64,000 bases of DNA from Auanema rhodensis (GCA_964057225.1 OZ059896.1:10168001-10232000), one strand, 5' to 3'; counted from the stretch's first letter, positions 17,936-55,600 are shown. The notes: a model not told the origin generated them from the letters alone. Numbers and translations are program-made.

Positions 17936-20689
17936 TTCTAACTCTTTTTGCTGTCTCAACATATTAATTTCAAGATATAAAAAGCTTTTTTCATATATAT
18001 TGCCAGAGTCTTAGTGGAAAAATATGAAATGTAGCAGAATAAGTTTTACAAAAGAGGACCATGCTCTATTTTAAAGAATAATGAATGAATTATGTCAATC
18101 TTGAATCCATGCTACTTCATGCAAAATATGATTGCAATACATTTTGATTGTAGTTTAATCATTCGGGAAATATATCATAACCATATATAATATTATTATA
18201 TAACTCATTTTATATGGTCCTACAGGGAATATATAAGATATGAATGTAGATTTTTGGCTATGCCGCCAAGCTATCGCCCTTTGTCATCTTTACTGGTTAC
18301 GGCTTCTGGTCCTGCTCATGTTACAATTGCTTAATAGATTGCTTTATGTGAAGCATATGGTCACCAACAAATTTCTGTGCCTCTATCTCTCTATCCTACA
18401 AATATTTTCTTTCTCTCTTTCTCTCTCTCTCTCAGTCTATCTCTCTCAGTCTATCTAGCTATCTCTTCTTTTCAACATTTTATTTAAAAATCTCTCTTTT
18501 TCTTTATATTCATTCTTTTCTAAGGCGGCATTCACTAAATTTGACAGCAGAATTGAAAGAACGAAGGGTGAAAGCTTAAAAAGAAACATGAAATATTCCA
18601 GGATAGTAATATTAGTCAACAGATTTTCATTTTTCAATGAAATGCTATTAGTAGTAATAACAACATGAATAATAAGCAGAAAATGAAGCTTACTGAATTG
18701 TTGTTGATTAATACAGCAAATGGCATTCTTTCATCATCTTCTTCTTCTTTTTTTGAGCAAATATGAGAAGTGAAATGATGAATTTGTTCGACGAAACATA
18801 AATTTTGACCACAATTTCAATTCGTTGTTATCTAAATAAGCCAAATATGCTAAGCATTAGGCTTGAAAGCTCTTTTTATCTCTCACTCGTTTTCTATTTT
18901 CTTTACACGCTTACTAGACTTCCAACTTAACATGCTACGCTTCAGTTTCCATCAAGAAAAAATGGTGATCATGTTTAAACATCGCTTATATACTCCATTC
19001 AGTCAATGTTAGCCAACTCACTTTGTTACTTAGTTAATGAAGAAAAAAATGAAAGGGAGAATTAGATTGAAATATAAACTTTCATCACTTTAATTAGTCA
19101 TATAAAACCAATTAGTTGTTCAAGATTTAATGATTTGAACTACATATATGTATATATGGTAACAATGATTTATATTTGATATCATTTCTTAAATAATTAA
19201 TATATTATTTTCAATTATATAAAAACTTTTATTTTATTCATATATACATACTTACTAGACCCTATTTCTACTACTGCTACTACTACCTCCTTTCACTATC
19301 TTCTTTTGAATCCTTTTGTTTCAAATTTTACATAGTAGCTTAGATTTTGGTCAATAGACTTTTATTATTAGAAATATATATATACATCAATAATGCTAAG
19401 AAAGCATATGTTAAGGAATTTGCAAAAAGTTTTAGAAAAGAAAATATATTGGAGGGGGTAGGGAGAGAATAAACTATAAGAAATAATATTCATATCTATG
19501 TGAAAGATTCCGACATTTGACTTGAATCATCTTCGACTTAAGTCTACATAGTCTAGTCAAAGTTGCCGACTTGAGCAAGTCTAATACTTCTTTACATATG
19601 TATCTAGACTTAACCCTTTGAAAAATGGCTACATACAAGATTCTTCTTCTGTGTTATTCCAGCAGTTTTCATAATATTTCAAAACTAACTGAGAGAAAAT
19701 ACATATGTAAAACCATATATATATATATATATATAAATAACTAAAATATGAAACAACTAGGGAACATTATTTATAATAAACTTTGAATAAAGAAAATCAT
19801 TGAATGAATTCATTGAATTCAATATTCGATATTCAAGGTATGGACGTTATTGGTCACTTGATATGTGGTAAGTCTAGTGGCTTATGTACATTTTTCTGTA
19901 TTAGACAGAAAATTATGTTTATTTTGAATAAAAAAAATGATAAGAATGATATGATGAAAGAAAATATCATGAATTATATGTGTGAATTAATTTGTCAAAT
20001 GCTTTGTCTTTTAATAAAAAATATAATATTATATATACAAAAAGTATGCTAAATGTAGTAGAATATGCTTATTGTTTTACTTTGTGTATCATTAGTTGAT
20101 TTAGATATGTTCAAATATTTGTAGAGTGTTTCTTAATATTATATTTATATAATTAATTTTATATTAATTTTGCAGGGATGAAGATGATAAATGGACTGAT
20201 TTATGTGCGTGTGATCAGCCACTATGCAATACATTTAGCTATTTAAGAGCTCATACAAGGTTTGTAAGATAACGATTATCGTTGACTTTTATTGAAAAAA
20301 TTATAAATTTAAAACTATTTAATATAGTTTTAATTGAATTATCGTAATAATTCATTATTTTTTAATTTATTTTCAGTCAGCAACGTCAAGAAGCACAATT
20401 TGTTCCTGATCCGGATGAAGTTCCATTAGTGTTCAATCGTATGGATCGTACAGATGATGAACCAGCTCCTCCAGCAGCACCAATTTCAACCAGAACTTCA
20501 CTCCTTACTCTATTACTTGTCGTGGTACCTCTAACAGTTGGTGGTGCTACAATTATGGTTTGTTTTAAAATTTCGAATTTTAAATTATTATTTTTTCTCA
20601 AAAAAAAATTTCTAAAGTTTGCTTTTTTTGTTTCACTAACAACAATTTTTCAGGTTGTTGCCTTCAACTACTACTGTCATTTGTGCTAA
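13538..20689 (+). CDS. Single-pass membrane protein with a 10-Cys three-finger (activin-receptor ectodomain/Ly6-like) domain and no kinase domain
   Basis: Exons 13538-13953, 20176-20259, 20377-20557 and 20654-20689 splice in frame. Hydrophobic signal (LILISLLILLFYLPTAES), then CYCTDDHCVPYGACDGTVC...RTCGSHPLGCHRDEDDKWTDLCACDQPLCN, a TM segment (LLTLLLVVVPLTVGGATIMVVAF) and tail NYYCHLC*. The true start Met is uncertain. Confidence 0.8.
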
Positions 20690-21774
20690 TCCTTGGTCTA
20701 TACTTTTAAATTGACACAAAGTTTTAATCAAATATTCATGTACTGGTATGGCTTTCAATGCGGGTCACTTACAGCACCGATATCAACGGCTTTGTGTTTA
20801 TTCTGGTGAATTCTTATGAAACTTCAACAAAAAATATTTTTTTTAAAACACCAAAAGAAGAAGAAACAAATTCTTTTTTTCTATCTCAAGAGTTACAACA
20901 CGTAAGACGTTCAAAACAATTTTTTTAACTCTTCTCGTCTCTTCAAGACTTTTCGAATTATAGCTTCTATATTTACCTTTTCTTTTGTTTAAATTTGTAT
21001 TCATAAAAATATATAATTTTAAATAATATATATTTGTTTTAAAACTTATTATATTTCATCATTTTCAGATATTTTTTTATTTAATGTATGGATGATGTGG
21101 TTCTCTGTATTTCCAATTTATTTACTAACTGAAGCTTTAATACCAAACCATTTGTGCCTTGTTAAATACAATTATACTCCAATCTCTAGATGTATATTGC
21201 TCAGATGGACCAGATATTCTTGAAAACCATGGCAAACGATAATATTTATAATATCAATACTTTTAAGTAAAAAAAACATTATTTTGAATTATTCTTCTGA
21301 AGTTGAAATTATTTTTTTAAATTGTAAATGTTGTATGTTGTAAGTCTTTGTGTTTATAAATCTTTTTTTTCTTGGTTTTCTAAGAAATATTATTTTTCTT
21401 TTATTTTTGGTTTTATACTGAGATTTTAAATGTTTTGTTATTACTCAACTTTACAATATTGAATATGTTTATATATTTAAGTAGATATCATTTCAAAATA
21501 AAATTTTTTTTTTTTAGAAAAAATTTATTTAATTTTTCAACATTTAATAATCTATATTATGCATATAAGCTGAAGGTTCAAGTGTAAGCAGAAGGTTCAA
21601 GAGTCAAGTGCATTGCCCCCCCCCCCTCCGTAATTAACCCCACCAAGCCGTAAGCCCCACCCCTTTTGCCGAATTGGACGCAGTTGCTTAAAAATAAAAT
21701 AAAATAATATACCTTTTTAAAACCATTTTACGTGGTGAAATTGCTGAATTTATGAAATGAATTTAGAATAAATA

Positions 21775-22893: not shown

Positions 22894-23221
22894 TATATTA
22901 TAATTGAATTTAATCAAAAAAAAATCAAAAAATTCAGAAAAACCTCACACAATTTGTTTATAACTTTGTCTAAGTCTAGTTCACAGATGGTTAATGAAGC
23001 AATGATGAACACAGAAAAAAAATCATATTATCAACATTGATATTCAATTTTGAAATTTATTAATTAAATGATTATATAAATGTATTATGTAGTTTTGTGT
23101 GCTGTTTTTTTTTGCTAATTAATCTTGAACAGCAAAAATGAAAAAGTATGCACCGTTTGGAAAAAAGGGCGGGGCTGACGGCGGGGGAGGGCTGCACTAG
23201 AGCCAAGCTGAATATTCGTAT

Positions 23222-23958: not shown

Positions 23959-24170
23959 GTATATATTTAAAATATTTTCACTTTGTATATCATTTGTTTA
24001 TAACTATGTCTAAGTCTAGTTTACAGATGGTTAATGATGTAATGATGAACACAGAAAATCATATTATCATATGTAATATTCAATTTTGAAATTGATTAAT
24101 TAAATGATTATATAAATGTATTATGTAGTTTTGTGTGCTGTTTTTTTTTTGCAAATTAATCTTGAACACC

Positions 24171-26555
24171 ATGCTAAACTTTCAAAACGAATCAAAACAT
24201 TTAGTCTATAGCATGCTATACGTACAAACCGAAAAATATTTTATGGTTATTTTTTGTATTTAATAAGAGATACCAATATTCCATAAATATATTTTTTTAT
24301 AATTTTGAAGAATTGAATATATACATATATGTGTGTATATGTGTACATAAATCAAATTTTTTCCTTTTATTTTTTCCTTCTTTAGTTTGTATTTTCTTTT
24401 CTTTTGGCAAAAAAGAGAAAGTTTAAATGTAAGTATTTTAACTGTTAGCCTATTACAGACACCTATTATGGAAGCTTATGTTATAATAATGTGGAGTTTA
24501 TCTATATTTGGGTTTATTACATTAATTGTATCGTTATATTTAATATATTCTCGAAATGTAAATGGATTATCAAACGAATTTAAATTTATTATGATAGGAC
24601 AGATTATTGTGTATATTCATTTATATTTAATTATCATTTTATCATTTTTTTTCGTATTTTAAGGGCAAGCGCATCACAAATATGTTTAACAGCTGGTACT
24701 GTTCCGATGATAATTTTACCATGTATGGCAGGTTATCCTATGGGAATACTCACACATTTAGGAATTGATACCTACATGCAGCTCTGTATTCAGATTAGCT
24801 TAATATCTTGTATGAATATAATATTAAATGTAATATTTTTATATTTTAATGAATTAATTATTTTCAGTAAATGCATTCTCTATAAGTTCATTAACTTTAC
24901 ATAGAGCATTTGCTGTTGTTATTAATATTAAAAGAAAATATGAATATATCTCTAAAGGAATTAATTATACACATATAATATTTCAATGTACAGTCTTTCC
25001 TTCTTTATTATCATTATTGACTTTTTTTCATGAAGAAGGTGTTGCTGAATGTCAAAAGGTACAATATCATTGATTAACTATAAGTTTAACTATAAATTTT
25101 AATATATATTTGATTTAGATATATAAAGGACCTATTCCAACTGGTATATATCTAAAAAGAACAATTTTTCTATTTCCTTCAATAGATAAATATACTTTAT
25201 TGTTCGTTTGTGATATTTTCGTTATGATTGTGGTATATACTTCTATATTCATCACAAGCACTCTATTTTTACTTCGAACCCTTGATAAACACAAATCGTC
25301 AGTTGTTTCCCAAAGTATGATGGATCATCAAAAACGAATAACTATATCAATTTTATCTTTGGTTAGTTACTTTCTTCGGCGCTTTTTCCGTTTCTATACC
25401 CCCCGTCTTAAGCCCCGCCCCTTTTACCGTTTGGCACATACTTTTATTAAAATGTGATACCTATGTGAGATACGGTGGTATCCAGATATCCACAAATGTT
25501 CCATTTTTTTTAGAATATCCCTTCTACAGTCTTTTATGGTACATCTCCACTTATTTCGAGCAAAAGAAAGACTCATTTTTCGTTAACATCGTTCACATTC
25601 GTTAGTCTCAAAGACTATACCTTTTTCTTGCAAGAATTGAATGGCATCAGCTTCAGTAAGAAGCCGTTCTTTTGGAGCAAACATTTAGACGAAAAATGGT
25701 TGATAATGTATATGCAATAACCAATAATGATTCAGTTCTTATATCATAATATATTCAAGGTTTATTACACTTATTATAGATATCCCCATAGGGGGGGAAA
25801 CCCCCCCCCCAAACCCCCCCGTTTTAGGAAGGGAAGCCGAATGGTAGAAAAGTATGCGCCCAACGGTAAAAGGGGCGGGGCTAAAATCGGGGGGTATAGA
25901 AACGGAAAAAGAACCCTTTCTTCTAATAGTCATTCATTTCATATACTAACTATACTTATTTATTTATTTATTTGTCTTTACAAGAGAATCAAATGATATT
26001 TTTAATTTTCATTTTATTCATTTAAAATTTTATTATTATTATTAATTTTTAGGCTTTTGTAGAAATAATAGGCGTATTTATACCTGCATTTTGGATTATG
26101 TTTGCAACTCTTACTGAGATACCATATCCAAGTAATATTTTAATTTTTTATAATATTTATTAAAAAATATTAATTATCTAAACGGTTGTATGTACGTAAT
26201 ACGTAATACTACGTATACTACGTATATATACATATAATTTTTCTAACTATTAGTACCAGTTAATAGATGATGTTTTTGAAGATTTAATTAAAATTATTTT
26301 AAAATAAACTAATTATAAAAATCATATACATATCTTTAAATCTTTTTTCCCAATTTGTTTTTTAGTAATCACCAAACTTTCATTTTTGTGTTTGGCTATT
26401 GCTCCGATTTTAGGATGTACTATTCTCATTGGAGGTACACCTGCATATGCAAATGAATTTCGAAAACTTATCGCAAAAGGTTAATTTATCCTATTTGAAA
26501 AATTTTTATTTTCAAATTTATACTTCTAGTATACCCTAAAACGAGTGGAAAATAG
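24171..26555 (+). CDS. Serpentine 7TM chemoreceptor, Srh/Sri (Str superfamily), copy 1; 8 exons, ORF intact
   Basis: Spliced protein MLNFQNESKHLVYSMLY-TPIMEAYVIIMWSLSIFGFITLIVSLYLIY...LPCMAGYPMGILTHLGIDTYMQ...HRAFAV...SQSMMDHQKRITISILSL-AFVEIIGVFIPAF...GGTPAYANEFRKLIAKVYPKTSGK*. Seven hydrophobic segments; the P..AGYP.G.L..LG motif is typical of Srh/Sri. Confidence 0.85.
25378..25915 (-). mobile_element. Merlin (IS1595/IS1016-related) internal-deletion derivative in chemoreceptor intron 5
   Basis: 8-bp TSD CTTTCTTC (25370-25377, 25916-25923); single copy at the empty sites in units 2 and 3. ~70-bp TIRs start with GG. The minus strand from ATG 25684 reads MFAPKERLLTEADAIQFLQEKGIVFETNECERC*RKMSLSFARNKWRCTIKDC, the zinc-ribbon N-terminus of Merlin transposases. 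Confidence 0.88.
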
Positions 26556-27349
26556 TCAATTATATTTTATAAAATTGGTATTTAACTACTTTCATAGCCT
26601 GGAGTAGGTTGCTCTTACGATAATTTCCATATCAATTCCGTATTAATATTAATATTATGATTATGTGATAATAATGATTTTTAACATCAAAAACAGCTAT
26701 AACTGTTGTTCTTCATCTTTCTTATTTTTATTTTTCTCCGTTTTGCTCGAATATACATACTAACCATGACTATGATATAGCTATGATTTGGGTTTTGTGT
26801 TTGTATATACTGAGAAAGGCTATGATTTGAGATCTGTCAACCAAAATGTTGTTGTTGAATATTAATCAAAATATTATGTTGTAAATGAAAAATGAATAAG
26901 ATGAAATGTATATATATATACTAATATACTATATGTATATTTAATTATTTATTTATAGTTAATAAATGCTATATCACTTCGTTCCTCATGGCTCGACCAA
27001 TATATACAAACAGACAAATAATAGAGAAAATGATAAAATGTTAAAATGAACCGGGCTTTGACCAAAAAAATGAAAATTGAATGATTTGTAGGAAAAAAGT
27101 AGTTTTTTTTTGTGAATTTTCTTGTCCACATGTTTTTTTCTGTGTTTGTGAAGATCATTTAAAAGCTGTCAGAATGTAACCGGCCACCCTAAGATGAGCA
27201 CATGTTCGTAGAACACAGTATGACTGTTCGTATATGCTATTCGATGCACTCGTTTTTTGGACTGGTTTTTATGTAGATATTGGGTATGTATTGATGAACA
27301 AGATTGCGAAGTTGAGGAAAGGGAGAGAGGAAAGCGATTATAACAATGC

Positions 27350-30300
27350 TTAAATGAGTTAAAAAAGATTATAAATGAGCAAGAACATTCAAAATTAAAG
27401 AAGAAATTCATATTAATAGAAAGACAAATTGATATTCTTTTACCTGATTGCTCAGCAGATAGCCTACAGAACGATGAAGAAACTGAAGAGGAGATATCTT
27501 CCGCGTACCCATCAAAATGTGAAAGTGAAAATGTTAATGATAATCAAAGAAAACCTTGAAAAAATTTCTAAAAAAAGGTACGAACAGAGATTTTTTGAAA
27601 ATAGAATTGATATAATGATGAAAAAAGTAAACGAATTGAAGAAAAAAAATTGAGCGATATTGAATATAATATTGGCATAAGAAAACAAAAACCAAAAACC
27701 TGCAATATATCAGAAAGCAATGATGATTTGAGAGAATATAACATGTTTTCACGGACAAAAATCATTTTACATAACTTTGATAGAGATATAGCAGAATTTT
27801 TTAAATTCATTTTCGGCTCATTTTCTTCTTATTATTCAGAGAACTTTAATTATTCTGTTAAAATTTTGAGCCAGCGCATTAGCATAAGCATGCGCCACAG
27901 AGGAGGGTGGTGGCAACTACTAAACAAGCGCCTTGAATTTTATTATATAAATACAAAATTTAATCCTGCAGACTTACCTACAAGAGGTATAGAGATTCAG
28001 GACGTAGTATATGAAGCCTGGATCAAAGGTCCGCATTGGAATGTGGAAGAAAAGGAAAGAAATAAGAGAAAGTATTGTGATGAACCAGAACAAAAAATAA
28101 ATTTGAATTTGAATTTTAATCTGTTAACCAAATCTGATATCAGACATAGAAGATTTAGATCATTTAGGTAGTAAATTTTCTTCTTATTCAAAATTTACAA
28201 ACATTACTCGACAAATAATTACTTCTATAACTAGAATCAGAGGGAAACTTAATCTAATTAAAGAAACTATGTTTGAAGATATTGAGAACAGAGATATTAT
28301 GACTGAAAATAAAATTATTCAACTGATATTATTAAGGATGAACTCGGTATTTCGAGAGTGAGAGGTCGCATTAGCAACTCAGAACCAGAAAATAAAAAGT
28401 ATCCAACATTGCTTTTTTGAAAAAAGATTTTCACAAAATTATTTTTGAACTATATGCACGAAATATTTCTTCATGCACCAAAAGAAACTTTAATGGCTAG
28501 AAAAGAATTTTTCATATTCAAATTTAAATCATGGATTAATACAGTTATTCATTTTTGTGTTGAATGCAAAAAATTAAATTACAGACCATACAAATATCCG
28601 AATTTCCCACAATTACCAAAAGAAAAAGTTACTAAGTTCAAACCTTTCGAAAATATCAGAATTGATTATGCAGGACCACTGATAATCGAAACAGAAACTA
28701 ATTCTAATAAAAAAGTATGGATCATACTAATTACTTGCCTCTGTGCAAGAGCAGTATACTTAGATTTAGCCAATGATAGCTCAAGCAAACAATTAAAATT
28801 GAATCTCAGAAAGTTTTTTGCTTGTAAAAGAGTATCATCAAAAATAATATCAGACAACGGAAGTCAGTTTTCAAAAACTGACAAAATTTTGAAAGAGTTT
28901 CTAGAAAATAAGCTAATCAAATGGGAAATTACAACTCCCTACTCTCCATGAATAGATGGGTTTTATGAAAGGATGATTGGTGTAACTAAGAAATATTTGA
29001 TTAAATCAATAGGAACCAGAAAAATAGAGTATAATAAACTCTACACAGTGCTAATAGAGATAGAAAACATATTAATCGAAGACCTCTTTCATACATGAAA
29101 GGCGATTTTGACAAGATAATAACACCCAAAAGTTTGGAATTTTATCATCCCGATAACATCATTCGCGAGTTTTCAAAAACAGGAAATGAAGGTAACTTGA
29201 ATAATTTTTTGGGTAGTCTTGCCTACCACTGGATGAACTGAGAACTGTTTCAAATCAAAAATCCTCAAATAAAAACTTCAATAAAACAAAGCCTAAAATA
29301 GGCGAAATAGTATCATGCATGAACAATAATGTCAAAAGACACAAATAATCTATGGCCCTGATAGAGAGAACTTATTGTTTCTAAAGATAGCAATGTTAGA
29401 ACAGTTAAAATTAGAAATTCATAAAAGTAAAAGATTCCTGAGATCCATAAACCAGTTAATATCTAAGGAAATATCAGAAAATTTGACTGAGTCAGAAGAA
29501 AATGAAATTCCCTTCGAACAATCTTTGTTAAATAATCATGACAACATTACTACCAGTGAGATCGATGAAAGGCTCAGAAATAATAGGAAAATTGATTATA
29601 AAAATTTTTTTAAACTTTTCTCACTTGATATATTTGAGTAATTAAATATGATTTATTCCAAAAAAATAAATAAATAAGAGTTATAAAACAGTTTTTGGTT
29701 TTTTGTTTGGGGTGGAGGATTCACGCTATGCAAACGCCTCACGTGAAAGACACGTAAACGTAAAGAGTATATGAACTGCCTCGATTCATGAAAAAGTTCA
29801 TTCTCTACAATGTCACAACAAGCGGTGATGAACGATTATGAAGAATTATTGGCAAAAAAAAAGCTGAAACGACTCCGACAAAAAGATAGAAACTGAACTT
29901 GAATCCGTAAATAATAGACTTGCTTTTTTGGAAAAAAAGTGTTGTTACCATTTGTGAACTTCTTCAAGAAATGAAAGATAGTGAGAAATTAAACTGTAAT
30001 TTTACCGTAAACCCGATTTATTTAACTGAATGGAATTAAGAAAAAGGTGAAGCTTGAAGCTAAACAAAGGGAATGTTCCAAATCTAAATTGTGTGATCAG
30101 AATCATCAAACTGAAAAATGTTCAAACCATCCCACTAAGATTGCAAAGTTTACGAAAAGAGAGAAATTAAATATTTAAAATGTTGCGTTTGAAAAATATA
30201 ATATTTTGTATTCGAAGGCGGAATGTTTTGTGAATAACACCAAAAAGTAAAACTATTTACACGGTTTTCTCAAATCAGTAAAAGGTAAACAAACAATTTT

Positions 30301-30541
30301 GAATTAACTCAATTAAGAAATCATTTTTAACAATATTTCTAGGTAGAGCGGCTGAATATACGTGAAATCTAACGTGCGTGGATTCGACGTGCATTGACGC
30401 AAATGAAGCTTTTAGTTTTAACTCTGATTAACAAAAACAACGCATAGTCGCATATAAATAATTTTTATAATTAAATTAATTCATATTAATACATACCAAA
30501 AATAAATCATTTATTATTATAAAATGTTTATTTACAATACA
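27350..30541 (+). mobile_element. 5'-truncated, degenerate BEL/Pao LTR retrotransposon with 3' LTR (30224-30541)
   Basis: RNase H end motif NPADLPTRG..W..GP.W, integrase H..H/C..C, DYAGP, ISDNGSQF and P.SP*..GFYERMIG, with many stops and frameshifts. Purine tract GAAGGCGGAA directly precedes a 318-bp TG..CA LTR followed by target sequence CTAGT. RT, gag and the 5' LTR were not found. Confidence 0.9.
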
Positions 30542-30847
30542 CTAGTCCGCCAAGACCATTCAACACTAAGTTTGGAAGAGAAAAAAAGATTGTGAATGAG
30601 GAATACATGAAAGAACAAGCGTTATATATAAAAAGATGAACAAAAAACGAAGATGACATGGGCTGTGACGATTGTCCGTTAAATTTGATTTCTGGTGGTC
30701 CGAACAAAACAGCATTGTATTTTTTGAATTCAACGTTTTTCGGCGATATACAGCAGAAAGAAAGGTGCAAAAAACAGAACGTTAAACCAGAAGTATAGAG
30801 TATCCAATTAGAAAAATATGTCTTTAAAAAGATATTTATTTATTTTA

Positions 30848-31455
30848 CCTGATTTCCATTGTTTTGTCCTACTTGACAGACAGATTGTCCAGGGCATTGG
30901 TAATTTTGGTTGCATGATCCAATTTGAACACCTCCAGTACATCCACAAGCACTGTTTTGTGGAGCCTGCAGAAGCATGCATGATTGAAACTGTACTTGTT
31001 AACGATATACCTGAGTGCTAACATATGGAGCAGGGGTTGGGAGATTTCCTGGAGTTCCTTGAGTATCCCACACGCAAACTTGAGCTTGGACATCGAATAC
31101 GGTAGCTGGAGCACATGGCATGCGTTGCCAGCGTCCGCAGAAGAGATTGTTTGGAGCTGGTTGGCATTGAAGGTAGTGAGAACGAGATTGGGGATCAACA
31201 GCTAATGGATCAACCATCCATGAGCAGATTCCTTGATATTGTGCGTTCTGAACACCTTGTCCTTGTACTACAAATATAAAACGTGTTATTTGAATGAGAC
31301 GCGTGAAACAATACCAAGGGGGCAAGCTTGTGGCTGAACAACAGCTGGTTGTTGCTGTGGGCAGTATTGTTGCTGTGTGGTGGTGGTCTGGCAGTTCTTA
31401 AAATATATTCATGAGAATCTTCCGAAAAAGTGGATTAATTACAATCTGAGGAGGA
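30848..31455 (-). pseudogene. Duplicated internal fragment (exons 6-8) of the chitin-binding gene
   Basis: Near-identical to 40283-40890, with identical ORF translations. It lacks the promoter and exons 1-5, and the terminal exon is deleted near 27062. Confidence 0.85.
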
Positions 31456-31482
31456 TTTATATATATAGATAAATGGACTGAT

Positions 31483-31630
31483 GGCTCTAGTGCAGTCGTA
31501 AGACATACCTTTCAGAACGGAGGTTGGGGGGAGTTTTTTTTCACGTAAAATGGTTTTAAAAAGTTATATTATTTAATTTTTAAGCAACTGTGTGCACTTC
31601 GGCAAAAGGAGCGGGGCTTACGTCTTGGGA
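31483..31630. mobile_element. Truncated Merlin-like MITE at duplication junction 1
   Basis: Starts GGCTCTAGTGCAG (the terminus of the 21575-23204 element) and continues as the reverse complement of about 21640-21735. The right end is lost in a deletion. Confidence 0.75.
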
Positions 31631-31920
31631 GAATTTTTTTTTTTAGAAAAAATTTATTTAATTTTTCAACATTTAATAATCTATATTATGCATATAAGCT
31701 GAATATTCGTATATATTTAAAATATTTTCACTTTGTATATCATTTGTTTATAACTATGTCTAAGTCTAGTTTACAGATGGTTAATGATGTAATGATGAAC
31801 ACAGAAAATCATATTATCATATGTAATATTCAATTTTGAAATTGATTAATTAAATGATTATATAAATGTATTATGTAGTTTTGTGTGCTGTTTTTTTTTT
31901 GCAAATTAATCTTGAACACC

Positions 31921-33752
31921 ATGCTAAACTTGAAGAGGATCAAAAAACATTTAGTCTATAGCATGCTATACGTACAAACCGAAAAATATTTTATGGTTAT
32001 TTTTTGTATTTAATAAGAGATACCAATATTCCATAAATATATTTTTTTATAATTTTGAAGAATTGAATATATACATATATGTGTGTATATGTGTACATAA
32101 ATCAAATTTTTTCCTTTTATTTTTTCCTTCTTTAGTTTGTATTTTCTTTTCTTTTGGCAAAAAAGAGAAAGTTTAAATGTAAGTATTTTAACTGTTAGCC
32201 TATTACAGACACCTATTATGGAAGCTTATGTTATAATAATGTGGAGTTTATCTATATTTGGGTTTATTACATTAATTGTATCGTTATATTTAATATATCC
32301 TCGAAATGTAAATGGATTATCAAACGAATTTAAATTTATTATGATAGGACAGATTATTGTGTATATTCATTTATATTTAATTATCATTTTATCATTTTGT
32401 TTCGTATTTTAAGGGCAAGCGCATCACAAATATGTTTAACAGCTGGTACTGTTCCGATGATAATTTTACCATGTATGGCAGGTTATCCTATGGGAATACT
32501 CACACATTTAGGAATTGATACCTACATGCAGCTCTGTATTCAGATTAGCTTAATATCTTGTATGAATATAATATTAAATGTAATATTTTTATATTTTAAT
32601 GAATTAATTATTTTCAGTAAATGGATTCTTTATATGTTCATTAACTTTACATAGAGCATTAGCTGTTGTTATTAATATTAAAAGAAAATATGAATATATC
32701 TCTAAAGGAATTAATTATACACATATAATATTTCAATGTACAGTCTTTCCTTCTTTATTATCATTATTGACTTTTTTTCATGAAGAAGGTGTTGCTGAAT
32801 GTGAAAAGGTACAATATCATTGATTAACTATAAGTTTAATTATAAGTTTTAATATATATTTGATTTAGATATATAAAGGACCTATTCCAACTGGTATATA
32901 TCTAAAAAGCACAATTTTTCTATTTCCTTCATTAGATAAATATACTTTATTGTTCGTTTGTGATGCTTTCGTTATGATTGCGGTTTTCAGTTCAATATTC
33001 ACAACAAGCACTTTATATTTACTTCAAACCCTTGGTAAACACAAATCGTCAGTTGTTTCCCAAAGTAGGATGGATCATCAAAAACGAATAACTATATCAA
33101 TTTTATCTTTGGTTAGTTACTTTCTTCTAATAGTCATTCATTTCATATACTAACTATACTTATTTATTTATTTATTTGTCTTTACAAGAGAATCAAATGA
33201 TATTTTTAATTTTCATTTTATTCATTTAAAATTTTATTATTATTATTAATTTTTAGGCTTTTGTAGAAATAATAGGCTTATTTATACCTGCATTTTGGAT
33301 TATGTTTGCAAGTCTTACTGAGTTACCATATCCAAGTAATATTTTAATTTTTTATAATATTTATTAAAAAATATTAATTATCTAAACGGTTGTATGTACG
33401 TAATACGTAATACTACGTATATATACATATAATTTTTCTAACTATTAGTACCAGTTAATAGATGATGTTTTTGAAGATTTAATTAAAATTATTTTAAAAT
33501 AAACTAATTATAAAAATCATATACATATCTTTAAATCTTTTTTTTCCCAATTTGTTTTTTAGTAATCACCAAACTTTCATTTTTGTGTTTGGCTATTGCT
33601 CCGATTTTAGGATGTACTATTCTCATTGGAGGTACACCTGCATATGCAAATGAATTTCGAAAACTTATCGCAAAAGGTTAATTTATCCTATTTGAAAAAT
33701 TTTTATTTTCAAATTTATACTTCTAGTATACCCTAAAACGAGTGGAAAATAG
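31921..33752 (+). CDS. Srh-type chemoreceptor copy 2 (apparent chimera of copies 3 and 1), ORF intact
   Basis: Same 8-exon structure as copy 1; starts MLNLKRIKKHLVYSMLY and ends VYPKTSGK*. Confidence 0.85.
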
Positions 33753-34667
33753 TCAATTATATTTTATAAAATTGGTATTTAACTACTTTCATACACTGGA
33801 TTATGTAGCTCTTAACCATAACTATGATATAGCTATGATTTGAGTTTTGTGTTTGAGCAGGTTGGCGCTTGATTTGAGATCTGTCAACCAAAATGTTGTT
33901 GTTGAATATTAATCAAAACATTATGTTATAAATGAAAAATGAATAAGATGAAATATATATATATATACTAATATACTATATGTATATTTAATTATTTATT
34001 TATAGTTAATATATGCTACATCACTTCGTTCCTCATGGCTCGACCAATATATACAAACAGATAAATAATAGAGAAAATGATAAAATGTTAAAATGAACCG
34101 GGCTTTGACCAAAAAAATGAAAATTGAATGATTTGTAGGAAAAAAGTAGTTTTTTTTTGTGAATTTTCTTGTCCACATGTTTTTTTCTGTGTTTGTGAAG
34201 ATCATTTAAAAGCTGTCAGAATGTAACCGGCCACCCTAAGATGAGCACATGTTCGTAGAACACAGTATGACTGTTCGTATATGCTATTCGATGCACTCGT
34301 TTTTTGGACTGGTTTTTATGTAGATATTAGGTATGTATTGATGAACAAGATTGCGAAGTTGAGGAAAGGGAGAGAGGAAAGCGATTATAACGATGCTGCT
34401 CTATTTTCCTTATATAATAAACTCAAATACTAAAAAAAGAGAGAAAGAGATGGAGATAGAGAGAAAGAAAGGGCAAAAGCGAAAATGAAAGAGATCGGAG
34501 AAACTGGAGATAATAAGGTATTACGCCAGTGAAGAAATAAGAGTAGGAAGAACAAAAAATGTTGAAATAATGGGTTGTGTGACGAACTGTGGAGATTGCA
34601 TTTTCCTTTTATGTTTTGGCGAAGCTTCAGGTGAGCTAAGAAGTCTTGTTTGCCCTGCGCCGCTAGT

Positions 34668-34985
34668 TGTTTTGTGAATAACACCAAAAAGTAAAACTAT
34701 TTACACGGTTTTCTCAAATCAGTAAAAGGTAAACAAACAATTTTGAATTAACTCAATTAAGAAATCATTTTTAACAATATTTCTAGGTAGAGCGGCTGAA
34801 TATACGTGAAATCTAACGTGCGTGGATTCGACGTGCATTGACGCAAATGAAGCTTTTAGTTTTAACTCTGATTAACAAAAACAACGCATAGTCGCATATA
34901 AATAATTTTTATAATTAAATTAATTCATATTAATACATACCAAAAATAAATCATTTATTATTATAAAATGTTTATTTACAATACA
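34668..34985 (+). mobile_element. Solo LTR of the BEL/Pao element
   Basis: 318 bp, TG...CA, matching 30224-30541, with 5-bp TSD CTAGT (34663-34667, 34986-34990). The empty site with one CTAGT is at about 39977. Confidence 0.93.
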
Positions 34986-35437
34986 CTAGTCCGCCAAGAC
35001 CATTCAACACTAAGTTTGGAAGAGAAAAAAAGATTGTGAATGAGGAATACATGAAAGAACAAGCGTTATATATAAAAAGATGAACAAAAAACGAAGATGA
35101 CATGGGCTGTGACGATTGTCCGTTAAATTTGATTTCTGGTGGTCCGAACAAAACAGCATTGTATTTTTTGAATTCAACGTTTTTCGGCGATATACAGCAG
35201 AAAGAAAGGTGCAAAAAACAGAACGTTAAACCAGAAGTATAGAGTATCCAATTAGAAAAATATGTCTTTAAAAAGATATTTATTTATTTTACCTGATTTC
35301 CATTGTTTTGTCCTACTTGACAGACAGATTGTCCAGGGCATTGGTAATTTTGGTTGTCGGGGAGCTCTTAAAATATATTCATGAGAATCTTCCGAAAGAG
35401 TGGATTAATTGCAATCTGAGGAGGATTTATATATATA

Positions 35438-35843
35438 GATAAATGGACTGATGGCTCTAGTGCAGTCGTAAGACATACCTTTCAGAACGGAGGTTGGGGG
35501 GAGTTTTTTTTCACGTAAAATGGTTTTAAAAAGTTATATTATTTAATTTTTAAGCAACTGTGTGCACTTCGGCAAAAGGAGCGAGGCTTACGTCTTGGGA
35601 GCGTTAATTACGGGGGGAGGATGAAACTGCACTGAAACTGAGCCACTATGCAATACATTTAACTATTTAAGGGCTCATACAAGGTTTGTAAGATAACGAT
35701 TATCGTTGACTTTTATTGAAAAAATTATAAATTTATAACTATTTAATATAGTTTTAATTGAATTATCGTAATAATTCATTATTTTTTAATTTATTTTCAG
35801 TCAGCAACGTCAAGAAGCACAATTTGTTCCTGATCCGGATGAA
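35438..35843 (+). pseudogene. Duplicated, disrupted exon 2-3 fragment of the three-finger gene
   Basis: Matches 20186-20419, interrupted by a MITE and followed by a ~330-bp deletion removing the TM-coding part and last exon. Confidence 0.85.
35453..35644. mobile_element. Merlin-like MITE (~190 bp) at duplication junction 2
   Basis: GGCTCTAGTGCAG...CTGCACTGAAACTGAGCC; same family as 21575-23204 in inverted orientation. No clean TSD; adjacent exon bases are deleted. Confidence 0.75.
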
Positions 35844-37012
35844 GCTTTCAATGCGGGTCACTCACAGCACCGATATCAACGGCTTGGTCTTTATTCTGGT
35901 GAATTCTTATGAAACTTCAACAAAAAATAAAGAAAATACAAATTATAACAATATTATATTTATTATTATTTTAAAAATAAAGAAAACAACTTTGAATAAA
36001 AATAAAATAATATGTTATTTAAGAATAATTTCTAAATACATTTACATATAATTACTGTTTTCTGAAACATCAAAAGAAGAAGAAACAAATTCTTTTTTTC
36101 TATCTCAAGAGTTACAACACGTAAGACGTTCAAAACAATTTTTTTAACTCTTCTCGTCTCTTCAAGACTTTTCGAATTATAGCTTCTATATTTACCTTTT
36201 CTTTTGTTTAAATTTGTATTCATAAAAATATATAATTTTAAATAATATATATTTGTTTTAAAACTTATTATATTTCATCATTTTCAGATATTTTTTTATT
36301 TAATGTATGGATGATGTGGTTCTCTGTATTTCCAATTTATTTACTAACTGAAGCTTTAATACCAAACCATTTGTGCCTTGTTAAATACAATTATATTCCA
36401 ATCTCTAGATGTATATTGCTCAGATGGACCAGATATTCTTGAAAACCATGGCAAACGATAATATTTATAATATCAATACTTTTAAGTAAAAAAAACATTA
36501 TTTTGAATTATTCTTCTGAAGTTGAAATTATTTTTTTAAATTGTAAATGTTGTATGTTGTAAGTCTTTGTGTTTATAAATCTTTTTTTTTCTTGGTTTTC
36601 TAAGAAATATTATTTTTCTTTTATTTTTGGTTTTATACTGAGATTTTAAATGTTTTGTTATTACTCAACTTTACAATATTGAATATGTTTATATATTTAA
36701 GTAGATATCATTTCAAAATAAAATTTTTTTTTTTTTAGAAAAAATTTATTTAATTTTTCAACATTTAATAATCTATATTATGCATATAAGCTGAATATTC
36801 GTATATATTTAAAATATTTTCACTTTGTATATCATTTGTTTATAACTATGTCTAAGTCTAGTTTACAGATGGTTAATGATGTAATGATGAACACAGAAAA
36901 TCATATTATCATGTGTAATATTCAATTTTGAAATTGATTAATTAAATGATTATATAAATGTATTATGTAGTTTTGTGTGCTGTTTTTTTTTTGCAAATTA
37001 ATCTTGAACACC

Positions 37013-38847
37013 ATGCTAAACTTGAAGAGGATCAAAAAACATTTAGTCTATAGCATGCTATACGTACAAACCGAAAAATATTTTATGGTTATTTTTTGTA
37101 TTTAATAAGAGATACCAATATTCCATAAATATATTTTTTTATAATTTTGAAGAATTGAATATATACATATATGTGTGTATATGTGTACATAAATCAAATT
37201 TGTTTCCTTTTATTTTTTCCTTCTTTAGTTTGTATTTTCTTTTCTTTTGGCTAAAAAGAGAAAGTTTAAATGTAAGTATTTTAACTGTTAGCCTATTACA
37301 GACACCTATTATGGAAGCTTATGTTATAATAATGTGGAGTTTATCTATATTTGGGTTTATTACATTAATTGTATCGTTATATTTAATATATCCTCGAAAT
37401 GTAAATGGATTATCAAACGAATTTAAATTTATTATGATAGGACAGATTATTGTGTATATTCATTTATATTTAATTATCATTTTATCATTTTTTTTCGTAT
37501 TTTAAGGGCAAGCGCATCACAAATATGTTTAACAGCTGGTACTGTTCCGATGATAATTTTACCATGTATGGCAGGTTATCCTATGGGAATACTCACACAT
37601 TTAGGAATTGATACCTACATGCAGCTCTGTATTCAGATTAGCTTAATATCTTGTATGAATATAATATTAAATGTAATATTTTTATATTTTAATGAATTAA
37701 TTATTTTCAGTAAATGGATTCTTTATATGTTCATTAACTTTATATAGAGCATTAGCTGTTGTTATTAATATTAAAAGAAAATATGAATATATCTCTAAAG
37801 GAATTAATTATACACATATAATATTTCAATGTACAGTCTTTCCTTCTTTATTTTCTTTAGTAACTTTTTTTCGTGAAGAAGGTGTTGCTGAATGTCAAAA
37901 GGTACAATATCATTGAATAAGTTTAACTATAAATTTTAATATATATTTGATTTAGATATATAAAGGACCTATTCCAACTGGTATATATCTAAAAAGAACA
38001 ATTTTTCTATTTCCTTCAATAGATAAATATACTTTATTCGCTGCTTATGATATTATCCTTATGCTTGTTATATATTCTTCTATATTCACAACAAGCACTC
38101 TATATTTACTTCAAACCCTTGGTAAGCACAAATCGACAATTGTCTCCCAAAGTAGGATGGATCTTCAAAAACGAATAACTATATCAATTTTATCTTTGGT
38201 TAGTTTCTTTCTTCTAATAGTCATTCATTTCATATGCTAACTATACTTATTTATTTATTTATTTGTCTTTACAAGAGAATCAAATGATATTTTTAATTTT
38301 CATTTTATTCATTTAAAATTTTATTATTATTATTAATTTTTAGGCTATTGTAGAAATAATAGGCGTATTTATACCTGCATTTTGGATTATGTTTGCAACT
38401 CTTACTGAGATACCATATCCAAGTAATATTTTAATTTTTTATAATATTTATTAAAAAATATTAATTATCTAAACGGTTGTATGTACGTAAAACGTAATAC
38501 TACGTATACTACGTATATATACATATAATTTTTCTAACTATTAGTACCAGTTAATAGATGATGTTTTTGAAGATTTAATTAAATTATTTTAAAATAAACT
38601 AATTATAAAAATCATATACATATCTTTAAATCTTTTTTTTACCAATTTGTTTTTTAGTAATCACCAAACTTTCATTTTTGTGTTTGGCTATTGCTCCGAT
38701 TTTAGGATGTACTATTCTCATTAGAGGTACACCTGCATATGCAAATGAATTTCGAAAACTTATCGCCAAAGGTTAATTTATCCTATTTGAAAAATTTTTT
38801 TTTTCAAATTCGTACTTTTAGTTTTTCCTAAATTCCGTGGAAAATAG
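37013..38847 (+). CDS. Srh-type chemoreceptor copy 3, ORF intact
   Basis: Same 8-exon structure; TM5 region reads YTLFAAYDIILMLVIYSSIF and the protein ends VFPKFRGK*. Confidence 0.85.
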
Positions 38848-39378
38848 TCAATTATATTTTATAAAATTGGTATTTAACTACTTTCATAGCCTGGAGTAGG
38901 TTGCTCTTACGATAATTTCCATATCAATTCCGTATTAATATTAATATTATGATTATGTGATAATAATGATTTTTAACATCAAAAACAGCTATAACTGTTG
39001 TTCTTCATCTTTTTTATTTTTCTTTTTCTCCGTTTTGCTCGAATATACATACTAACCATGACTATGATATAGCTATGATTTGGGTTTTGTGTTTGTATAT
39101 ACTGAGAAAGGCTATGATTTGAGATCTGTCAACCAAAATGTTGTTGTTGAATATTAATCAAAATATTATGTTGTAAATGAAAAATGAATAAGATGAAATG
39201 TATATATATATACTAATATACTATATGTATATTTAATTATTTATTTATAGTTAATAAATGCTATATCACTTCGTTCCTCATGGCTCGACCAATATATACA
39301 AACAGACAAATAATAGAGAAAATGATCACAAATTGATTCAATATTTAGCCGGGCTTTGACTAAGTATGAATGGTACAC

Positions 39379-42300
39379 TTAAGCACGCTTGGACTTCTTG
39401 CGGAAATAACAGCAAACCATGCACTGAAAAAAATGAAAATTGAATGATTTGTAGGAAAAAAGTAGTTTTTTTCTGAATTTTCTTGTCCACATGTTTTTTC
39501 TGTGTTTGTGAAGATCATTTAAAAGCTGTCAGAATGTAACCGGCCACCCTAAGATGAGCACATGTTCGTAGAACACAGTATGACTGTTCGTATATGCTAT
39601 TCGATGCACTCGTTTTTTGGACTGGTTTTTATGTAGATATTGGGTATGTATTGATGAACAAGATTGCGAAGTTGAGGAAAGGGGAGAGAGGAAAGCGATT
39701 ATAACGATGCTGCTCTATTTTCCTTATATAATAAACTCAAATACTAAAAAAAGAGAGAAAGAGATGGAGATAGAGAGAAAGAAAGGGCAAAAGCGAAAAT
39801 GAAAGAGATCGGAGAAACTGGAGATAATAAGGTATTACGCCAGTGAAGAAATAAGAGTAGGAAGAACAAAAAATGTTGAAATAATGGGTTGTGTGACGAA
39901 CTGTGGAGATTGCATTTTCCTTTTATGTTTTGGCGAAGCTTCAGGTGAGCTAAGAAGTCTTGTTTGCCCTACGCCGCTAGTCCGTCAAGACCATTCAACA
40001 CTAAGTTTGGAAGAGAAAAAAAGATTGTGAATGAGGAATACATGAAAGAACAAGCGTTATATATAAAAAGATGAACAAAAAACGAAGATGACATGGGCTG
40101 TGACGATTGTCCGTTAAATTTGATTTCTGGTGGTCCGAACAAAACAGCATTGTATTTTTTGAATTCAACGTTTTTCGGCGATATACAGCAGAAAGAAAGG
40201 TGCAAAAAACAGAACGTTAAACCAGAAGTATAGAGTATCCAATTAGAAAAATATGTCTTTAAAAAGATATTTATTTATTTTACCTGATTTCCATTGTTTT
40301 GTCCTACTTGACAGACAGATTGTCCAGGGCATTGGTAATTTTGGTTGCATGATCCAATTTGAACACCTCCAGTACATCCACAAGCACTGTTTTGTGGAGC
40401 CTGCAGAAGCATGCATGATTGAAACTGTACTTGTTAACGATATACCTGAGTGCTAACATATGGAGCAGGGGTTGGGAGATTTCCTGGAGTTCCTTGAGTA
40501 TCCCACACGCAAACTTGAGCTTGGACATCGAATACGGTAGCTGGAGCACATGGCATGCGTTGCCAGCGTCCGCAGAAGAGATTGTTTGGAGCTGGTTGGC
40601 ATTGAAGGTAGTGAGAACGAGATTGGGGATCAACAGCTAATGGATCAACCATCCATGAGCAGATTCCTTGATATTGTGCGTTCTGAACACCTTGTCCTTG
40701 TACTACAAATATAAAACGTGTTATTTGAATGAGACGCGTGAAACAATACCAAGGGGGCAAGCTTGTGGCTGAACAACAGCTGGTTGTTGCTGTGGGCAGT
40801 ATTGTTGCTGTGTGGTGGTGGTCTGGCAGTTCTTAAAATATATTCATGAGAATCTTCCGGAAGAGTGGATTAATTACAATCTGAGGAGGAGCTTGTTGAC
40901 ACTGGCATGGCTGGGAAGCTTGAGTTTGAGTGTTGCAACATTGGGTAGATGCAAGGACCTGCTCGTTCTGAGAGTTCGTAGTAACACAGGTACAAGCTGG
41001 CTGAGCAGATGGGCAAGGACAAGACTGATATTGAGAGAATTGGATTCTCTGAAAAAAAAGTATTTTTGAATGAAATTTGCATCGAGATTCTTACAGTTGT
41101 AGTAGCCTGTGGAGAGCGACGAACTTTTCCTGAGTTGATAGGGATGTTCACTGGCTCAAGAATTTCTGGTGAGGGGCAAACACAGTTGCTTTCACCATTT
41201 GGACAGGCACATTGACGAGGAGCTTCACGAATTTCTTCTACGAGAAACTGAACAGAAAATATTATATGTATAGTTAGAAGATCATATTAACCTGTGTAGC
41301 ACGATTCTCACTAGGACAGAACTGGTAGCTGGTTGCATTTCCGGAGTCGCAAAGTTCTTGTTGACGATTAACGGAACGAATGGTTTTGCAGCGACGGGAT
41401 GAGGCAACGAATTCATATCCAGGAAGGCATTCACGAAGAAGCCAAATACCAAGATCTTTTCTGTAGAATGTATAAGATTAGAAAGATCAGAAAGAAGTGA
41501 AAACAAAATTTAAAATAAAGTTAGTAAGAATTGGATGGCTATTTTTTTGGCTACTAGTTTTGTGTTATTTGAGTTTGCTGTCCGCAGTCTTTGAGCACTT
41601 CTAATATCCAACTAGTTTTGCTATTTGGCGAAAAGTTTTAAAACATTATTTTGAAAATCAAATTTAGCAAAATTAATTGTTTGCCCTAATTGGCTAAAAA
41701 AACGCAATCGAAGGTACGATCATATTTCTTGTTCAGAGCTGTTGCAGCAGAAACGTTTCTGTTCGTTCTCTCTTTGCTTTTTTCGGAAAACAACTGTTCT
41801 AAGCTAGTCTTAACCACATAAAGTCATCGCCGATTGTGTTTTGGAGGCGAAAGACATGGGCGGATAAGAACAAAATAAGATGAAAAACGAGAAGAAAGCA
41901 GCTGATTTCTATCCATTAAAACACTTTTACATGTTTCTCTTATTCCGTAGAATATATTGGTGATCTTTGAGCGCGAACTATCGTGAGCAATCAAACTAAA
42001 AGGACAAAATGCTAAGGTCCTTCATTTTGATCAGATCATGAAGCTCTTTAAAATTTCAACAAAGCATCTGTGAGCAGCAATAAGGGCTCGTGGTCATTGT
42101 CAGATAAGTGTACTCAATTAGCTTTTCTCAGATTATATACGTGGCTGCGCAATGATTGAACGATACTATGATCTTCTTGAATTTGTTTGATCTTCATCTT
42201 GTATGATCCATCATCAATTGCATTAAATTTCACCCCGAACCCTTATTTATATCTTGAAATCTGTTCTGAAGCATCATTCTTACATGAAGGGTACTCATCG

Positions 42301-52684: not shown

Positions 52685-55600
52685 CTATATGATATGACAA
52701 GTAAAGGTTTGTGCGAATTCAATATACATATCTATAACTGGAGCCAGTACATTTAGGTGATTAATATCAGACTCCTCTTTAAGAGCATTTCTAATGGAGC
52801 GAATCTGAAATAATGTTGTTGACAAGGTATTATCCATTTGATTTGCTTACATCCTCTAAAGTTCGAGAAACAATGTCAAGACTTCGTCTGTAGAACAGGG
52901 AGTCCCTTTCCAGTAAACTATATCCAACAATACATTGGAAGAACATCATCTTGCTGCATATCTCATGGATTTTAAAAGTTGAAAGATTCCTTCCCTTAGA
53001 GGTGGTTGTTTCAGCAAATAGAACGTCTAGAGCAAATGTATAAAAAACAAAAAAAAACTATGCTTACTTGTGTCCGGCACAGAAAAAGCTTCAGAGAGAT
53101 CATTAATAACAGATTCAAAGTAAAAACAGAATTCAGATCGATATCGTTCTGCGGCTTCCTTAGGCAAATTAGAGCTAGTACATGAAATTGCTAGAATCTT
53201 GTAAGACTCCAGAAGTTCAGGTGATATCTAAAATTTATCATTAAGAGCAAACAATATATTATACATACAATTATCTGGCCGTTACTGTCCATCATGAATG
53301 AAGTTTCAGTGCTAAGACACTTCTCTATATTCATTTTCTCGTCCTCAACGGTTTCCATAATAAAACTTGAAACCTGGAAAATAATAAATTAGATAATATG
53401 TACGTTGTATCATCACTTCAGTAGGTATAAACGGAACTTCTTCTTCTTCTTGAAATCTGGAATTCCAAGCCCAAGTTATTATATCCCTTTCATATTTCTA
53501 AAAAAAAACTAATAGTTATAAAATTATTATCTTTTAACGACTTCCACAAGGCAAGCTACAAGCTTTTGAACTAAGCGATCCTCTTTTAAAAACTCAAGAA
53601 GTCGCCAGGAATTTCCTAGTAGCCAAAAAATCAAAGCTTGCGGTATACATGCCTGAAAAAAAAACATTTATTTGAATGATATACTAGTTCCACAACTTTG
53701 TGATTCCAAAAAATGGTATTTAAGAACGCTTTCACCAAAACCGACCTCTCCTCTTCGGAAGCTCTTAAATCTTCATCAACATATGTACACTGCAAATTTG
53801 AATAAAGCATTTGAAATTTAAAAATAATTTACTTCGAATACTAAAGCATGTGAGAGAAGCCTCGTATAAGCTGCACATTGATTGGGATGAATGGTTTCTT
53901 GCATACACACTTTTCGGATAAGAGACCTTAAGAAACAATGTAAATTGTTTAAATCGGAAAAAAACCAACTTGATAAAGGATAAGAATATATTACCGTTGG
54001 CAAGAACATACGCCAACTCTAATACATGCTCTTCCTAAAAATAAAATATTATGTTTTTCCAAAACCATTCGGTATACTTCTTTATTGCGAATATCTTTAA
54101 TAAGCTGTTCTTGAAATGACAATTTCACCTGATGAAAGAGGTCAACATTTTTCATATTGTATACCACCTAAAATTAAAAGTACAGTATATGATTAAATGT
54201 GGTTAGAATACTTCAACTAAAACATCCCCTAAATCATCAACAGATAACTTTCGAATACTTTCCAGTTGTTCTTCAGAAAGAAATGTTTCCACAACTGAAT
54301 TGACTGCATTGTCCTTAGTAGTCTTCATATTTATCAAGTGAAGACCAGCATTTAAGAAAGCAGACTTAATTAGAACGACAACCATTGTAAATTTACAAGT
54401 ATTTAAAAAAAACCTTTCCAATCTCCCGTTCATCCAAGATATTTGAAGGTTCATGCTCAGATTTAGATTTACGTCCTCGTTTAATCGGTAGAGCAACAGG
54501 TGCTGAGGTTATGACAGCTCGTTTCCGCTAAAATTCAGTGTTTTAAAAGTAACATGAATAGTTAACATACTCCTCTCCGAGAGAGATCAGAAGATCCAGC
54601 GTCAGACTTGAACAAAACATTACTTCTAGTGGTCACAGACCTAATTCCAGAGGTAGATTCATCTTTTGTACTGGGTTTGACTTTCGCAACATTAGGAATA
54701 ACTGGTTTTGTTCTAGAACTTCTCATTAGACGTCCTCCACGACCGAGCGATTGTGTAAACTTATTCAGCATACTAATATCACAGAACTTCGATGGGCGAG
54801 CAGTTGGTTTTCTACTTTGTTTCTTATAATCTGTATCTTTTCTGAGATCATCGTCGTCATCTTCTGTCTTAGCGCAATCGATATTTTTATGATCACTAGG
54901 CCCTTCCTCGGAAACATGCTCATGTGCATTGTCCTTTGTTTTGGGCGCTGGCTTAACGGGAGCACTTTCTGTTTTGGCAATTGGTACAGTAATGACGGTT
55001 CCAGTCTCACTAGTCTTTGGTTTAACTCTTTGAGGAAACTTTCTTCTTTCCACTACAGGAGTGTGAAGTCCTTTATCAGTGGTTTTAGAGGCTGTAGGGT
55101 CAGTCTTAGTATTTGCGGCCAAAGTCGAAGCTGGTTTTACAGTATTGGTTCTAGCTGTGGCTGCTGTATGAGTCTTACATATTGTATCAGCTCTTGATAT
55201 TTTATGATTATCCACTTTTTTTGTTGTGCTCGGATCGGCAGTGAGTATTTTAGTAGGTGACGCTATCTCATCTAATGAAAAAAATAAAACAAAATAGGTG
55301 TAATTAGAAACTCACCTTTTATATCAAGAATCAAATTATCCTCTCCTTCAGATTCAGATACCAACAAATTTACAGCATTGGTTTGCACTGATACAATGGG
55401 TTGAGAAGCTTTAGAATTCTCAACTTCCTTTGTAGTACACTCCGAACTGATTTCCGACGGAAGTGGAAGATTTTCTTCAGTTGGTTTGGAGCTGCTTTCA
55501 TTTGTTGTATCCGAGTCAGGAATTGGAGCTTCAATTTGCAATGATTGTGAATCATTATCACTGTCAGTCATTTCCGCAGCAGATGGTTCTTGCACACAGG

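Follow-up and report, generated by a model that had tools for sequence, protein, structure and literature searches.

Analysis of a 64,000-nucleotide stretch of the Auanema rhodensis genome (GCA_964057225.1 OZ059896.1:10168001-10232000; hereafter the window, in which positions are counted from the first letter) revealed three tandem chemoreceptor genes, here called A, B and C, which are nearly identical in their introns and most of their flanks and differ in short, dense patches. We consider it about an even bet (roughly 50%) that the array has undergone concerted evolution and that the patches are leftover islands of divergence. The mosaic arrangement of the differences, the equal load of change carried by silent and non-coding sites and the failure of searches to turn up outside donors are observed; a greater age of the array and whatever part selection may have played in it are inferred.

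Self-comparison of the window showed three tandem repeat units, A (23959-27350), B (31709-34397) and C (36801-39711), with approximately 3.4 kb in common at 96-98% identity. Each unit carries one receptor gene on the plus strand, located at 24171-26484 (gene A), 31921-33681 (gene B) and 37013-38776 (gene C). Gene A has an open frame of 326 codons in seven exons (24171-24221, 24459-24610, 24664-24809, 24868-25058, 25119-25361, 26053-26131 and 26366-26484) separated by GT..AG introns, and genes B and C have the same seven exons and 326 uninterrupted codons each, which bears out the three paralogues described in an earlier note on this DNA. The predicted proteins are 92.3% (A/B), 89.9% (A/C) and 92.0% (B/C) identical. 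Judged from their sequence, A, B and C are Srh-type nematode chemoreceptor genes. In an exon-by-exon scan with the Pfam family PF10318 (Srh), exon 3 of gene A by itself scored 32.3 bits (cut-off 26.3) over profile positions 52-96, and exon 5 of A, B and C scored 16.7-18.1 bits (18.1 for A) over positions 164-236, collinear with exon 3. The hydropathy profile indicates seven membrane segments, an approximate topology to which the transmembrane (TM) assignments below refer. The model of exon 1 is a prediction from its reading frame and splice sites. The frames have been kept open in all three copies, with neither exon indels nor premature stops.

Comparison of the three copies revealed that variable sites make up 6.3% of the exons, 1.0% of the introns and 6.6% of the non-coding 3' flank. 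Pairwise divergence is 3.7-4.8% in the exons, which is 4-7 times the 0.5-1.0% of the introns; over the 212 bases preceding the genes it is 0-0.5%. The flanks are 99.7-100% identical between units. The near identity of the introns had been pointed out in the earlier note and is borne out by these values, as is that of the dead chitin-gene fragment, in which 30848-31455 and 40283-40890 differ at 2 of 608 bases. Indels are absent from 981 exon bases and number six in 771 intron bases (p ~0.007). The variable sites are strongly clustered (index of dispersion 5.6): when the sequence is cut into 66 segments of forty bases, 31 are invariant against 11 expected. Apart from four islands, the coding parts of the copies resemble one another as closely as the introns do. 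The differences in the 3' flank are also gathered in dense patches, equal in density to the exonic ones, and the idea that the array holds a built-in neutral control therefore fails.

The four coding islands are described here by their positions in gene A. The first (24180-24194, codons 4-8) lies in the N-terminus, where 10 of 13 bases distinguish A from the identical B and C while length and frame are unchanged. The second (24873-24911, codons 119-131) falls in TM3 and again sets A apart from B and C, with one change private to C, while the third (25008-25031, codons 164-171) falls in TM4 and sets C apart from A and B. The fourth and densest island (25200-25328, codons 208-250) covers TM5 and intracellular loop 3, with a synonymous divergence (dS) of 0.20-0.35 and a ratio of nonsynonymous to synonymous divergence (dN/dS, omega) of 0.52-1.04. 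In the core of TM5, 20 of 45 bases are variable, 11 of them private to C, nine to B and none to A, interleaved in eight runs. At the protein level 12 of 15 consecutive TM5 residues vary, so that no one face of the helix is singled out. Within loop 3 the intermediate sequence is that of B. The presence of an intermediate copy in TM5 and loop 3 may reflect a fine mosaic produced by patchy repair, or possibly an ancestral state from which the other two copies have changed fast. Three further islands lie in non-coding sequence, also on the plus strand, and no donor was found for any of them. Directly 3' of the stop codon (26508-26544), C differs from A and B at 11 sites; at 26597-26822, B differs from A and C at 24 successive variable sites around gaps of 145 and 5 bases in B; and the island at 27035-27063 adjoins a 64-base insertion private to C. 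As a separate observation, the exon 1 patch gives A an N-x-S sequon in its predicted extracellular N-terminus that is present in neither B nor C, which holds only if exon 1 is coding.

Distribution of the changes over the protein fits the earlier description in part. The TM3, TM4 and TM5 peptides given there match the encoded sequences exactly, and the clustering is far beyond chance, but the changes are not "almost only at transmembrane residues": 26 of the 42 variable residues are in TM segments, no enrichment over the 58% of the protein that these segments occupy (p = 0.38). Five of the other 16 are N-terminal, five are in the loops and six in intracellular loop 3. The residue changes are concentrated in TM5, where 14 of 29 residues are variable, and in the loop that follows it.

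All 118 variable sites are two-state, and when each is labelled by its odd copy out, the labels form blocks, with 31 switches against 75 +/- 5 in permutations and runs as long as 10, 24 and 13 sites (p <= 0.0008); this label permutation is a GENECONV-style test and not the GENECONV program itself. From 5' to 3', the odd copy is A in exon 1 (10 sites), A in TM3, C in TM4, B and C interleaved in the core of TM5, and A and C in loop 3, followed in the 3' flank by C (11 sites), B (24) and C (10). Gene B, which lies between the other two, resembles C in TM3 and A in TM4. Any two of the copies have stretches of 250-355 bases in common without a single difference. Two haplotypes make up the mosaic of every copy, combined differently in each, as expected of copies that exchange tracts. 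The suggestion of patchwise recombination made in the earlier note is upheld as far as exchange goes, but the source is the three copies themselves, which accounts for their identity and not for their divergence.

Silent sites carry the excess as well. From Nei-Gojobori counts, whole-gene dS is 0.031-0.053, exceeding the intron divergence of 0.005-0.010 (p = 0.009 to 0.0002); dS within the islands is 0.16-0.26, and the value for TM5 and loop 3 given above corresponds to 20-50 times the intron divergence. Since the islands were delimited post hoc, their dN and dS are both inflated but the ratio is not, and the whole-gene test is independent of this choice. With silent and non-coding divergence raised 20-50-fold in patches, point mutation together with selection for protein change is insufficient. 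Because exchange between copies resets introns and flanks, a divergence that is greater in exons than in introns is in itself no proof of positive selection, and the exon excess here points to inter-copy exchange masking older divergence, not to fast adaptation.

In the scheme that we favour, an older tandem array would have undergone repeated gene conversion or unequal exchange among A, B and C. Such exchange would have erased nearly all differences in the introns, the promoters, most of the exons and the co-duplicated dead flanks, and about ten short tracts would have escaped and retained the older divergence. The non-coding islands mostly lie beside indels, which would block the formation of heteroduplex, and selection may hold the exonic ones by eliminating conversions through which functional differences among the receptors would be lost, a mechanism accepted for the exons of the primate L/M opsins and for RHD/RHCE. 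Counted over the gene body, variable sites fall preferentially in exons even if clusters stay intact (circular-shift p = 0.011), and the probability of no premature stop would be 0.04 if the same changes were placed at random. More tentatively, the exonic islands, held by selection against homogenisation, could mark residues for ligand or coupling specificity (in the N-terminus, TM3, TM4, TM5 and intracellular loop 3) of an orphan Srh lineage, a proposal to which we give perhaps a minority chance.

The alternative that survives best is that the copies are truly young and owe their patches to conversion by diverged donors outside the assembly, such as deleted array members or a diverged haplotype. 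The near-perfect identity of the flanks would suit such an origin, and most patches are contiguous, private to one copy and spread equally over silent and non-coding sites. We searched the whole of the host assembly (181 Mb, AT-rich) for donors. DNA searches with genes A, B and C and with the 3' flanks of B and C returned the three copies only, besides low-complexity scraps, using a method that recovers retroelement matches of 66-75% identity, and the peptides of exon 4 and exon 5 had no further match in the genome. The family profile identified 31 other Srh-like places in the genome; in local comparisons with 30 loci and the rest of the window, the best agreement was 54%, over a 41-residue part of exon 3, and that of the TM5 region was at most 29%. 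Exact words of at least 11 bases taken from each patch had no template elsewhere in the window, and a profile built from exon 5 of the three copies matched 0 proteins at E <= 0.001 among 1.84 billion representative proteins. Since no relative of exon 5 was found, the changes are not polarised. On these searches the receptor lineage is an isolated one, with no donor on record for any patch, and the earlier suggestion of patchwise conversion from other paralogues is left with no candidate in the genome at either the DNA or the peptide level. Import would also call for separate events in three copies within the same 130 bases of exon 5, and the retroelement and the transposon-borne promoter copy described below suggest an older array. 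We consider this explanation unlikely.

Less probable still is that redundant copies have drifted under relaxed constraint, the patches being clustered multi-base mutations left by error-prone repair synthesis during exchanges in the array. Omega near 1 would agree with such drift, as would 28 same-lineage changes at adjacent bases and the replaced-in-place look of some patches, among them the exon 1 patch (10 of 13 bases) and the B patch, shorter by a net 5 bases; a micro-patch is present in the transposon-borne promoter copy as well. Known repair-associated mutagenesis, however, falls far short of a density of 20-44% divergence over 45-130 alignable bases, no template for the patches lies nearby, and the presence of six indels in introns but none in exons, together with the absence of premature stops, indicates that the frames are still constrained.

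The main idea of the earlier note, that young duplicates had their ligand pocket remodelled by positive selection on new point mutations, fares worse. It could draw on the 4-7-fold excess of exons over introns, on the protein-changing nature of 42 of the 48 variable codons, on the high share of variable residues in TM5 and on the intact frames. Whole-gene omega is 1.28 for A-B, 1.13 for A-C and 0.77 for B-C, none significantly above 1 (Fisher's test for omega > 1, p 0.30-0.83), and omega within the islands is 0.57-1.17. The changes are indeed mostly nonsynonymous, as had been stated, but this is about what mutation is expected to produce and is no signal of selection. The non-coding patches are equally dense, the variable stretch of TM5 takes in nearly every residue, and TM segments are not enriched for change. 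Positive selection of this kind is largely refuted by the excess at synonymous sites, and we regard it as very improbable. An assembly artefact, in which alleles or collapsed or over-polished repeats were placed in tandem, is barely credible even though assembly and polishing have difficulty with near-identical repeats of 3-5 kb, since the unit spacings are unequal (7750 and 5092 bases), each unit has private structures (a Merlin element, a small transposon and a truncated retroelement in A, a solo long terminal repeat [LTR] in B, an empty site and a complete neighbouring gene in C), and the islands can be aligned and keep the reading frame, as polishing noise would not.

The age of the array was approached through insertions in its flanks. 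A 5'-truncated LTR retroelement (27351-30541, plus strand) lies between gene A and the chitin-binding fragment, contains the integrase core PF00665 and has a tail collinear with its relatives. Its 3' LTR (30224-30541, plus strand, 318 bases, TG..CA) abuts a truncated piece (30542-31631, minus strand) copied from the 3' end of the CBM_14 (chitin-binding) gene that lies downstream, in which the CBM_14 match falls within 30848-31455. In unit B, a solo LTR (34668-34985, plus strand) is flanked by the 5-base duplication CTAGT and matches the LTR of unit A at all 318 bases, with a second, shorter CBM_14 gene copy at 34986-35601. In unit C, the empty site (39977-39981) matches the target duplication of the B solo LTR, and the complete CBM_14 gene starts at 39977. 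The retroelement has thus lost its 5' end in A and is reduced to a solo LTR in B. One insertion, marked by the same 5-base duplication, is common to the A and B units and lies beside a fragment that only the first duplication could create, so that the insertion came after the first duplication. The element has at least four frameshifts and at least three in-frame stops, whereas its relatives on other contigs keep open reading frames of more than 800 residues; at the level of the intron divergence, approximately 0.3-0.6 stops would be expected (an interpolated value). A decay of 15-25%, calculated from 20 stops in one frame, was rejected because frame-aware alignment attributes most of these stops to frameshifts, and the decay is now put at roughly 1-6%. 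Deaminase-type hypermutation of the element was likewise rejected, as the stops align with many different residues. A second marker is a promoter copy carried by a Merlin element upstream of A (22952-23131, plus strand), which is approximately 92% identical to all three receptor promoters; against this 8% divergence, the promoters of A, B and C differ among themselves by at most 0.5%. The small transposon private to intron 5 of A, 3% away from its nearest relative, points in the same direction. Judged by these rough surrogate clocks, the array is probably older than its introns imply, and the youth ascribed to the paralogues is probably an illusion created by exchange between copies. The Merlin-borne promoter copy stops just short of the receptor start codon and, among scattered differences, has a dense micro-patch of about 5 changes in 7 bases.

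Several observations weigh against concerted evolution of an older array. The retroelement clock is a rough one, even at the revised decay, and presumes that the element was intact at insertion. The A-unit LTR and the B solo LTR, with 0 differences in 318 bases and 0 in 689 with the flank included, fit a very recent split of A and B equally well, and with no outgroup the age of the islands lacks a direct measure. Islands of 13-40 bases with sharp edges require very short or patchy conversion tracts, and the interleaving of B and C in the core of TM5 is not accounted for by simple tracts. As for the role of selection, the exon enrichment has p = 0.095 when the 3' flank is included and p = 0.058-0.17 from exon 4 onward, TM5 shows no significant preservation of hydrophobicity (p = 0.11-0.14), and most non-coding islands adjoin indels, which by themselves block exchange.

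Other features of the window were recorded alongside the array. Intron 5 of gene A alone contains a small non-autonomous DNA transposon (25378-25915, 538 bases, no strand assigned), with 64-base terminal inverted repeats that are 92% complementary and an 8-base target duplication; dozens of copies are present in the genome, the nearest 97% identical. Its inner part has been amplified many times over approximately 80 kb of the same contig (7.90-7.98 Mb) at 83-84% identity. Upstream of A and of C, the blocks 20421-20838 (418 bases) and 35845-36057 (213 bases) are mutually unrelated and sit inside flanks otherwise about 99% identical; they represent a replaced segment. A tandem repeat of approximately 350 bases, with three to four copies that are 86-93% identical, is located at 55519-56924. 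No Rfam family or tRNA was detected in the window when hidden RNA genes in the 3' flank were looked for.

If selection does keep the exonic islands, they would point to the parts of the receptor relevant to specificity, information that is hard to obtain for nematode chemoreceptors, since few of them have a known function (PMC8120010). The array would then represent a natural chimera series, in which each copy combines the two haplotypes differently from island to island, and could be used for mapping chemoreceptor specificity. The case also advises caution when gene families are scanned: near-identical introns and dead flanks in a tandem array are no neutral clock.

The phenomenon itself is known from other systems. 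A 'peak of divergence' around functional sites under conversion and selection has been reviewed (PMC3924837), and the array resembles the primate X-linked L/M opsins, which are also tandem seven-TM receptors with introns more alike than exons, synonymous divergence in exons exceeding that of introns, and detectable conversion tracts; in gibbons, exon divergence exceeds intron divergence and the conversion tracts lie mostly in introns (PMC3213168). The opsins differ in that their tuning sites are known and the age of their duplication is known from orthologues, whereas the array has three copies, has islands in non-coding sequence too, and has its densest island spread over nearly every residue of one helix. 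The human RHD/RHCE pair, as cited in the review (PMC3924837, reference 43), has a short and highly divergent exonic region with low divergence elsewhere under ongoing conversion; unlike the array, it comes with population data and a fitted two-locus model of conversion with selection. Closer in phylogeny, interlocus conversion among Caenorhabditis tandem paralogues (fog-2/ftr-1, hsp and the zim/him-8 clusters) has tracts that include short introns and go down to a few bases, and conversion-resistant regions have been read as functional divergence (PMC3966223), but these genes are not chemoreceptors. A full-text literature search found no paper on concerted evolution with divergence islands in nematode chemoreceptors, for which, as far as that search shows, the present case would be new. 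The nearest studies within the same superfamily, which ask the same question of which residues diversify, found adaptive signals in srz, and in srw and other families of wild C. elegans, that peak in extracellular and intracellular parts, with TM domains conserved (PMC8120010). The array departs from that pattern in having no excess of dN/dS and in placing its densest change inside TM5.

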